Origin: Chrysemys picta bellii
Lineage: Eukaryota
Direction of reading: 5' to 3'
Length of the DNA stretch: 64,000 bases
Assembly: GCF_011386835.1 (NCBI RefSeq)
Contig: NC_088798.1
Span: 86,552,001-86,616,000, forward strand
Shown here piece by piece: positions 18,001 to 21,000 of this stretch. The position numbers and the translations under genes were made by a program. The notes under the pieces are model-generated. The model saw only the letters and a list, made by a program, of their open reading frames with translations, had not been told where the DNA came from and did not search any database. The first letter of the stretch is position 1. Every line of letters starts with the position of its first letter.

Positions 18001-21000
18001 CACTGTAAATATTTTTGATGAGAATTTTTTGTCCAGCTCTAATTATACTCCAGTCCTTCTCAACCATTTGGTTGGTGGAAGTTTTGTCTTTGATGTTGAT
18101 GGGCACAGTTCAGGTCCAAAATTAAGAATGAAGTAAACAGAAGAAGAGTCTAACTTAAAAAAGCAAAAAAACAAACAAACAAACAAATCGAGATGAGGAT
18201 CCAAAATATACAATTGATAGTCCACCCTTTAACCCAAGCCATTGGAGAAAAGGCAGCCCAACGTCATGAGAGACAGGCAGAGAAAAGAGCTTGTGATGGG
18301 GGTTTTGTTTGCATTTTGTCACTCTTTTAACATAACTTTTCATAGACTTCTCCAATTTAACACTATATATATAATTTTCTTTAGGTTTAATGGTAAACCT
18401 TTCTTTGAATTTAAGTATTGGTTTTAACAGAATACAAATCAAGAGAAAAACCTCTGTTCTCAAATCTGAATGGTGGATCTTAACTCTGAAATTCTCTGTA
18501 CACGTATGCCTGGAATGTCTATGGATACCACACAGCAGAAACAGTCAAAACTGACCATGTAACTTTTCCAAGAACAGAATTCTGTTCCTAGTAGGATTTT
18601 TTTAAAGGTATTTATTTGGTTTCAATACAATTATTTATTTTTGTTCCCTAGGATCCATTAGCTTTTTCTTTCTCTACTTAAAAACAAATTCCCATCACAC
18701 TACAGTAGCTGTTCAATACAGTGGATTCAATACAACAAATGAATTTCATGGTAAAAACATTAATACCAGCCACAGTTCTTGCTGGAACAGATTCTTTGTT
18801 GATCCAAAACACAACCTGAGACAGGACTACAGTCATGGTGCATGGAATATATGTCTGAATGAGATAGTAGCCTATTTTCCTTTGCAGATGAAAATAGAGC
18901 AGCTGAAGTGAATATTCACCTGCAACAAACAAGCAATGAAAGGTGATGAATAAATGGAATGATGACATGAGCTGTTGCAGAGACTTTAACACAGCATACC
19001 AAAAACTGTTCTAGCTGGAACAGATTCCTTATTAATCCAGAAAGACACCTGAGAAAGAATGACTGTCATAATGCAGGGAGTATAAATCTGTATCATGAAG
19101 TAGCCCATCTTCCTTTGCAAGTGGAAATAAACTGTCATTATTACGTATTCACCTGTTAGGAGACAAGTATGTCAGCATTATTTTGGCAATATATGAACAA
19201 ACATTACTGGAGTAAACTTTGGAATGTCTTAAATTAATATGCTGTGTTTTGAGGAAAGCAGTGGCGAATAATGGGCCTCCTACTATATGATAAAGTTTAG
19301 CTGATCAATAGACGCTAAAGTGAATCAACCGAGATAAAGAGAAAAGGTGAATCCGTTATTACTTTGATATGTTGTTCTACTACTGAAAAAGCAGTGTTCC
19401 TGAAAGTTACATTAAACTTTGCCCACCTATGAGCAATATGTTGAAAATCAATCTTTTGCAGGAAACAAACGAAACCTTTTCAGCAATTTTAGTTAGAGGA
19501 AGAAGAGTAAACAGTTAAGAGATAAAAAGAAAACAATTTAGTTGGTTTCCAATGAGTGTTTTATAATGTGTCAATTCTACATGAGGCTATGTCTTACCTG
19601 TGTTAGATTTAATTGTTTCACTAGACACTGTTTGTCCTATAAGATCATACTGGAGGAGACTGGAAGACTCTTGTGGTACTTCTACTGAATACAGAGGTCC
19701 CTTTTTCCATGTGTAAATGATTTCACTTTTTGGATAGGCATCTGGGGTATCATGGAGAAAAGAATCGATAGTATTAATTATATTACAGTAATGCCCAATG
19801 GCCAAAATAAATACTATGGCCCCACTATGGTAGGTGTAGTACAAACAAGGAGACTTGGTCCCTACCATTTCAAACTCTTTCTAATCTAATTAAAATTCAA
19901 TTCTAATTAAGATTCAACTCCTGAGCATAACAAACAGGAGCAGGGACAGGAAGGATGAGGGTAATAATAGTAATAATAGCTTCTCCTTCTCAACCTTCCT
20001 CTTCCACCCTGGCTCCCATGTAGCTAGCATCTCCACAGGACCCTTTTCTCCCATTTAGCAACATAGGAATGGCAGACGGTGCTCATGCCCAGGTTGAGAA
20101 CCCATAACATAGACTAACAACATGCCTCAGCTTGAGGGTTTTAAATTACATTAAGGTTCTTTTTTATTCTAATTTTAAAATTCCCTATCAACTCATAATG
20201 CATTGTTCTCCCTTAATATTTGTCTTGTTTCCCTCCATAAATAAAAGGTTATCCTGTACCCATGGCCTTTGTATTTATTTTCCCCCGGCGCTACATAGAT
20301 TACAACCACCACCCATCTACCTACCATTAAAGAGCCTTATTAAGAAACATAAGCTATCACTATGGCTCCCTGGGATGATGGGTCCCCCTCTCTCTACGTA
20401 AGCCCCCTCTTGATGTGGTGTATCTGCCACATGTGGGTCTCTGAGACTGTCAGGGCCCTGAGAGTTATCCCACTCACTCCGCTATTGCCCACATTGGAGG
20501 GGTGGTTCCCTCCAGCTGAGGGCATAAAGTCTGTTGATTGCAAGTGGTCATTTCAACATCGTTCTTCATTCAAAATATACCAGTTTCTTTAATACGTGAG
20601 GGCATGTAGTGATAACCTTTCTTCACTGCTAAAACAACAGATTTGTTAAAAGGTACCAGTATAGACTTGGCTGTGTCAGAATAACAAAAAACAATACAAT
20701 TTATAGCCATGAGCTTGCAATGAGATCCACTAGCCTGGATTCCACTGACTATGCAAAGTCCTGGTCCTAGTGGTATGCATTAGCAAATTCTGATGTGGGA
20801 TATGGGTCTATAGTTAGTTAACTCCTATTAAGGACTGCCCTAAGACCCCATTTTATGAATATATATATTAAAAACCTGAAACTTTTACAAAACTTACAGC
20901 TCCCAAACTTCAATGGACAAGCATGCCCATCCATAGGGAAGTTTACCAGCCGCATGGGACAGTCAGCATTAATGGTCAGTCTAAAATACATTAAAATAAA

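Follow-up and report, generated by a model that had tools for sequence, protein, structure and literature searches.

An ancient alternative to exon 7 of GABRA6, conserved from sharks to birds, in a turtle gene for the GABA-A receptor alpha-6 subunit

Mutually exclusive exons that alter the sensitivity of Cys-loop receptors to agonists or modulators are known from insects, where exons 3a/3b and 6c/6d of Rdl encode extracellular loops and the exon 8 variants of the Drosophila nicotinic acetylcholine receptor (nAChR) subunit D-alpha6 reach a transmembrane helix. In vertebrates, Nova-1 controls exon 3A of GLRA2, the gene for the glycine receptor alpha-2 subunit, via an intronic UCAU cluster. GLRA2 also figures among the human tandem duplicated exon substitution events (PMC9741552). 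Here we describe two homologous exons, 7a and 7b, in GABRA6, the gene for the GABA-A receptor alpha-6 subunit, within a 64,000-nucleotide stretch of the genome of the turtle Chrysemys picta bellii (NC_088798.1, positions 86,552,001 to 86,616,000), hereafter called the window. We consider it highly probable that 7b is a real and ancient coding exon of GABRA6, born in tandem before the split between cartilaginous and bony vertebrates, kept by selection and spliced in place of 7a.

The GABRA6 pair shares with exons 3A/3B of GLRA2 that it is a tandem, equal-length, alternative pair in a vertebrate anion-selective Cys-loop receptor, and the Nova/UCAU control of GLRA2 has a parallel in a cluster of YCAY motifs between 7a and 7b. 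The two differ in other respects: the GLRA2 exons encode part of the extracellular domain, differ at few residues and are kept in mammals, whereas the GABRA6 exons encode beta10, M1 and the start of M2, differ at 14 of 50 residues and, as a pair, are absent from all mammalian models retrieved. Rdl and D-alpha6 are further removed, being invertebrate genes with independent duplications. A likeness of another kind exists to exons 5N/5A of the SCN genes and 8/8a of CACNA1C, which are also ancient, of equal length, encode a membrane segment and have both copies under strong purifying selection; unlike GABRA6, these genes belong to voltage-gated families and their exon pairs are kept and well studied in human.

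GABRA6 occupies about positions 2-23,600 of the window on the minus strand, as do all the features described below. Exon 7a, the canonical alpha-6 exon, lies at 19000-19152 and exon 7b, the alternative homologous exon, at 18767-18919; both are 153 nucleotides (nt) long, and the 80-nt intron that separates them (18920-18999) is identical to that of Caretta at 80 of 80 positions. Exon 6 (19598-19741, 144 nt) has the same residues as its counterpart in the alpha-6 of Malaclemys, Caretta and Pelodiscus, and its last base, at 19598, is the first G of a glycine codon that is completed by either 7a or 7b. Exon 8 (14163-14422, 260 nt), which encodes the rest of M2, M3 and the start of the following loop and is identical in residues to that of Malaclemys, begins at 14422 with GG and has an acceptor common to both. 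The acceptors of 7a and 7b read CCTAACAG and TTGTTGCAG up to the exon boundary, and the donors that follow the exons read GTATGC and GTATTA. Having the same length and phase 1/1 each, either exon fits between exons 6 and 8. The lower end of the window falls inside the next coding exon of GABRA6 (2-52, about residues 360-376 of the Pelodiscus protein), so that the last part of the gene lies outside the window.

Across their 50 complete codons, 7a and 7b encode the same residue at 36 positions and a changed one at 14, and half of the shared residues (18/36) use a different codon. The nucleotide identity is 107/153, with differences at codon positions 1, 2 and 3 numbering 10, 9 and 27, respectively. 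The motifs YFHLQRK and SQV, plus a further motif of 13 residues, are common to both, and reciprocal tblastn between 7a and 7b gave an E value of about 1e-25, a similarity well above chance. All that had been claimed for the two exons on the letters alone, i.e. coordinates, lengths, phase, AG/GT sites, 80-nt spacing, residue identity and number of codon changes, was reproduced exactly. That reading had also called 7a the mammalian-type sequence, which is correct, as 7a is identical, residue for residue, to the solved alpha-6 chain 9oum_C over positions 226-275. This identity, together with the match of exons 6 and 8 to the alpha-6 of Malaclemys, assigns the exons to alpha-6 and not to another alpha subunit. 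Between 18650 and 19300 there is no open reading frame (ORF) of 35 or more residues besides the minus-strand frames of 7a and 7b, and an Rfam search of 18000-20000 matched no family.

To see how widely 7b occurs, protein models were searched by a full HMMER scan with the 7b peptide and by two word-indexed searches, and genomic loci were compared in six species and one squamate contig. Peptides of the 7b type were found in alpha-6 models of sharks, bichir, sturgeon, bowfin, early-branching teleosts, frogs, salamanders, lizards, turtles and more than 60 birds. The sharks with a 7b-type exon in protein models number two, and the shark and bichir models hold both exons. Among turtles, the models with 7b are those of Caretta, Pelodiscus and Pelusios; the 7b peptide of the Pelodiscus isoform X2 is identical to that of the window and the Caretta peptide differs by one residue. 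In birds the peptide is invariant from ostrich to passerines, owls excepted. At the genomic level, a tandem of 7a followed by 7b with AG/GT at all four sites is present in the window, Caretta, the stork Mycteria, Sceloporus, the squamate contig, Xenopus tropicalis and Acipenser. The intron between the exons measures 80 nt in Caretta, identical to the window, and also 80 nt in Mycteria, 83 nt in Sceloporus, 87 nt in the squamate contig, 121 nt in Xenopus tropicalis and 1,449 nt in Acipenser.

The mammalian models retrieved (platypus, echidna, two marsupials and pika) and those of alligator, tuatara and coelacanth carry 7a only, although for protein models such as these absence is no proof of genomic absence. 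The opposite state is also found. An alpha-6-like gene of the eel Anguilla rostrata (L009:9161-11509, protein P0287) has a 7b-type exon alone between exons 6 and 8, and no relic of 7a was detected at this locus. NCBI names the eel protein ‘alpha-4-like’, and many percomorph fragments (e.g. P0047, P0180 and P0181) show a 7b-type exon as in the eel. Alternative exons can separate among gene duplicates, a process described as splice isoform separation (PMC4494069), which the eel gene with 7b only resembles. In frogs, salamanders and one teleost gene, full-length ORFs with 7b are the main or sole annotated alpha-6. A 300-residue protein of Xenopus laevis (P0002, XELAEV_18016985mg) has 7a-like and 7b-like segments with many non-conservative changes and has lost part of M2-M3; judging by its sequence, it may be a decaying alpha-6 homeologue.

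Pairwise Nei-Gojobori estimates of the ratio of nonsynonymous (dN) to synonymous (dS) change indicate purifying selection on both exons. Among orthologues, dN/dS is 0.03-0.2 for 7b and 0-0.07 for 7a, the dN of 7a being 0 among sauropsids, and across turtles, birds and lizards the pairwise dN of 7b is 0.009-0.026 (1-3 of 50 residues) against a dS of 0.09-0.24. Between 7a and 7b of the same species, dS is saturated and dN is 0.18-0.22. A different picture is given by an amniote contig (L003:195-560, Logan SRR26459678_1345523), in which 7a is intact, encodes a protein identical to that of the window and has 11-15 nt changed relative to sauropsid 7a. Some 60 nt 3' of it lies a relic of 7b that has lost the acceptor AG and acquired several indels and in-frame stops. 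This relic is what 7b looks like when selection is absent, and is thereby an internal control; the contig may mark a lineage that lost 7b, possibly the mammalian one.

The relic bears on the idea that 7b is a pseudo-exon, either decaying or never in use, whose intact look is owed to chance or to a recent duplication, for the relic demonstrates that decay is possible. Elsewhere, the saturated dS between the exons, the low dN/dS of 7b, its grouping into one clade from shark to bird and its presence in spliced mRNAs (see below) contradict this idea, which we regard as effectively refuted. Apart from the decayed copy in L003, stops, frameshifts or dN/dS near 1 were not seen in 7b orthologues of any lineage compared, and the proposal of the sequence-only reading that 7b is an old tandem duplicate under purifying selection is borne out by orthologues that are intact and keep their AG/GT sites.

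A maximum likelihood tree built on a 52-residue segment groups every 7b exon, including the shark and teleost ones, in one clade (support 100/99, stem 0.35), and the 7a exons fall in a poorly resolved group with exon 7 of alpha-4 and alpha-1. A single 7b clade that extends from shark to bird places the duplication before crown jawed vertebrates. By these sequence comparisons, 7b has one common origin and an intact reading frame maintained over more than 400 million years, and a tandem duplication of exon 7 before cartilaginous and bony vertebrates diverged would account for it.

One could still ask whether 7b has been kept mainly as an element acting at the RNA level, e.g. as a decoy exon that tunes the splicing of 7a, and not for its protein. 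Between the turtle and the stork (L006), dS is lower in 7b (0.125) than in 7a (0.233), which hints at an extra RNA-level constraint on 7b and would fit such a role. Against this, the changes are overwhelmingly at third positions, the frame has stayed unbroken throughout those 400 million years, and 7b is part of the full-length ORFs that dominate alpha-6 annotation in amphibians and in the teleost gene mentioned above. We therefore hold a mainly regulatory role to be most improbable.

Transcript assemblies allowed us to follow 7b into mRNA. A bird contig of 3,038 nt (L010, from Logan, run SRR23174785) comprises a 181-nt leader, an ORF of 465 codons and a 3' untranslated region of about 1.4 kb. 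Aligned with the Mycteria gene it falls into ten exon-sized blocks, the seventh of which matches 7b at 96% and 7a at 80%; this pattern of blocks identifies the contig as a spliced mRNA in which 7b, and not 7a, stands between exons 6 and 8. In a frog, a 1,840-nt contig encodes a full-length alpha-6 with 7b only (P0197), and a bird protein with 7a only (P0301) is also recorded in a Logan assembly. Each of the transcript-assembly contigs found (L010, P0197 and P0301) has a single exon 7, and none has both or neither. RefSeq lists isoform pairs of the same length for Caretta and Pelodiscus, with 7a in X1 and 7b in X2 in both cases. Transcripts or gene models with 7b only and with 7a only are thus on record in birds, frogs, turtles and lizards. 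The retention of 7b from shark to bird and its splicing in place of 7a in bird and frog indicate that non-mammalian vertebrates can make a second alpha-6 subunit, which would have the same length as the first and be changed at 14 positions.

For expression closer to the window, we considered the share of sequence words found in individual runs, whose label as RNA is a guess. Run X7 contains 0.75 of the words of 7b and only 0.15 of those of a 1-kb stretch, as would be expected of exon 6 and 7b with 7a missing; run X1 contains 0.50 of the 7b words and covers both exons; the runs of organism C contain about 0.16 of the 1-kb stretch, apparently with 7a only. The last result, with these runs not among the matches to 7b listed, is what would be expected if 7b were intact but silent in this turtle, with only 7a expressed, and were used in lineages such as amphibians. 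A silent exon would not have held dN so far below dS among sauropsids, nor its splice sites and a conserved block upstream of them; the X2 isoforms with 7b in the two other turtles and the word shares of runs X7 and X1 also speak against it. A silent 7b is in our view unlikely, and we infer that the window turtle uses both exons.

A further possibility is that mRNAs normally include both 7a and 7b, which would extend the subunit by about 51 residues, the arrangement seen in the longest RefSeq models. Double inclusion keeps the frame, splicing of the 80-nt intron is conceivable with a branch point some 62 nt from its donor, and models of this kind exist in birds (the P0193 cluster, with 72 members), lizards, frogs, sturgeon, bichir and sharks. 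Set against these are the single exon 7 in every transcript contig found, none from Logan having both, and the sufficiency of one copy in the teleost alpha-6-like gene (7b only) and in mammalian models (7a only). In addition, a second beta10-M1 segment would raise the number of membrane helices to five and reverse the orientation of M2-M4, an arrangement that the Cys-loop fold does not permit. We judge regular double inclusion to be very unlikely.

The gene sets contain both kinds of deviating isoform. Those 51 residues longer, of about 500-525 residues, hold 7a and 7b, and isoforms of about 408-422 residues in RefSeq and Ensembl models of birds, turtles and lizards lack both exons and hence M1. 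Proteins that carry both or lack both are P0313, P0317, P0319, P0320, P0322-P0324, P0326, P0327, P0329 and P0332-P0334. As skipping of both exons removes M1 and a duplicated beta10-M1 adds a membrane helix, Cys-loop topology disfavours both products, and alpha-6 models with both exons or with neither are likely to be non-functional or artefacts of prediction.

Exon 7a covers the beta10 strand after loop C, the pre-M1 segment, M1, the M1-M2 linker and M2 as far as position 3'. In the numbering of 9oum_C, 7b of the window differs from 7a by V228S, I229L, M230Q, T231L, V232L, M240I, F243Y, M244L, I247T, T249I, I252T, I256V, S261V and F275A. Five of these substitutions are in beta10 just after loop C, eight in pre-M1 and M1, and one at position 3' of M2. 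Three of the changes, Gln for Met230, Tyr for Phe243 and Ala for Phe275, are shared by every 7b examined; residue 228 varies between Ser and Ala, and most 7b have Val261.

The M1 helix of alpha subunits contributes the complementary side of the beta+/alpha- transmembrane pocket, the site of etomidate and neurosteroid action. Residue 247 is Ile228 in the numbering of mature alpha-6, the determinant of furosemide sensitivity, and 7b of the window turtle carries Thr instead. The 7a of fish, frog and shark has Thr or Ala at 247, from which it follows that Ile247 is the derived state of amniote 7a. The two subunits would differ in function, and our best guess is that the difference may lie at the beta+/alpha- transmembrane interface and in lower M2, affecting desensitisation and sensitivity to modulators.

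Concerning the signals that could direct the choice, a block directly 5' of 7a (19153-19181, ATAATGCTGACATACTTGTCTCCTAACAG) comprises the polypyrimidine region and a match to the branch-point consensus, CTGAC, whose A is at about 19172. This block matches at 28/30 positions in the bird and 27/30 in the lizard, the remainder of intron 6 aligning poorly, and CTGAC is the putative branch point of 7a. In the 80-nt intron, a block conserved among sauropsids (TTTCATTGCTT) precedes the 7b acceptor by 17-21 nt. Its A at 18937 is the candidate branch point, 17 nt before that acceptor and 62 nt beyond the 7a donor, the latter distance being close to the minimum that splicing requires and probably above it. 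The 7b donor is GTATT, without a G at +5, in all amniotes examined and GTATG in frog and fish.

The same intron holds seven YCAY motifs where 1.4 are expected, a number reached by only 2% of the 80-nt windows across 14000-19800. Enrichment is seen in the inter-exon intron of six species (4-7 observed against 1.4-2.3 expected), with 4-6 motifs in the five species other than the window's. Under the position rules of NOVA, a cluster 3' of 7a and over the branch region of 7b would favour 7a and repress 7b, and the YCAY cluster may accordingly act as a NOVA-type switch towards 7a. Neither RBFOX (TGCATG) nor PTB-type motifs were found near exons 7a and 7b. As a best guess, a regulated choice between the exons would combine the near-minimal 80-nt intron, the 7b donor without +5G in amniotes and the conserved YCAY cluster.

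A competing RNA pairing was considered and rejected as the mechanism. The one strong pair (I4; -20.5 kcal/mol, z = -3.1) joins an 11-nt stretch of intron 6 (19238-19248) without mismatch to 18988-18998, a stretch overlapping the 7a donor, and such a duplex would loop out 7a; a second pair (I2) is an 18-nt complement over the 7a acceptor. Neither complement is conserved in the stork or the lizard, so we take both to be turtle-specific or due to chance.

Several observations weigh against a replacement of 7a by 7b that is strictly exclusive, in use in this turtle and of pharmacological consequence. At 153 nt each exon is made of 51 codons, and inclusion or skipping of both leaves the frame unchanged; nonsense-mediated decay (NMD) cannot police the choice between 7a and 7b and is ruled out, with the reading frame, as an enforcer of exclusivity. 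Steric hindrance is a borderline case in amniotes, whose inter-exon intron measures 80-87 nt, and lacks support as a general rule, as the distance of about 62 nt between donor and branch point is probably sufficient; the long introns of frog and sturgeon show that it was not the ancestral mechanism. For the window turtle, the use of 7b rests on its relatives and on the word shares of runs with a guessed RNA label, and the RefSeq isoforms are predictions. Gene sets of many birds, turtles, lizards, frogs and sharks contain models with 51 residues more and with 51 residues fewer; exclusivity may be leaky, or these models may be artefacts. Finally, 7b of Caretta has Ile at 247, and the furosemide argument consequently fails for some turtles. 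Of the proposal that the exons are mutually exclusive, the use of 7b as an alternative to 7a stands, given the spliced mRNAs with 7b for 7a in bird and frog, and strict exclusivity is less certain, given the annotated models with both or neither.

Exon 7b is already contained in automatic models of RefSeq, Ensembl and B10K, as the sequence-only reading had thought possible: the X2 isoforms of Caretta caretta (XP_048717531.1) and Pelodiscus sinensis (XP_025039365.1) hold the same exon. These RefSeq and Ensembl alpha-6 models are automatic and unreviewed, and they state nothing on the homology of the exons, their age, selection or function. A full-text literature search found no description of a duplicated GABRA6 exon, in line with the earlier statement that no precedent was known for a vertebrate GABA-A alpha subunit, and two papers on zebrafish gabra6a and gabra6b do not state the exon type of each gene. 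The catalogues of tandem duplicated exon events in human genes list GLRA2 and no GABR gene; with 7b missing from mammalian models, human-centred catalogues cannot contain the pair. The pair is therefore unremarked in the literature searched, yet already present in databases. It clearly exemplifies an old pair of homologous exons that mammalian models lack, and on a practical matter, public gene sets list all four combinations of the two exons, at least two of which are probably wrong or non-functional.

The tonic inhibition of cerebellar granule cells is set by receptors containing alpha-6, which are also drug targets, and comparative work treats alpha-6 as a single protein. In a study of the turtle spinal cord, block by furosemide was used as the signature of alpha-6, and about a third of motoneurons were insensitive (PMC4274054). 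A second isoform, more than 400 million years old, alters M1, the strand after loop C and position 3' of M2, regions that line the beta+/alpha- transmembrane pocket and the lower pore, and the two exons offer a concrete origin, open to test, for diversity among the receptors of every non-mammalian vertebrate examined. We can also imagine, as a tentative and somewhat doubtful extension, that the ancestor of jawed vertebrates had two beta10/M1 exons, made two pharmacologically and kinetically distinct alpha-6 subunits and chose between them through a neuron-type splicing switch of the YCAY/NOVA kind, and that mammals later lost 7b, at least one teleost alpha-6-like gene retained 7b only and amphibians use mainly 7b. 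If this were true, alpha-6 pharmacology as we know it, including furosemide block and tonic current, would fit one of two ancestral forms and would not be directly transferable to reptiles, birds, amphibians and fish.

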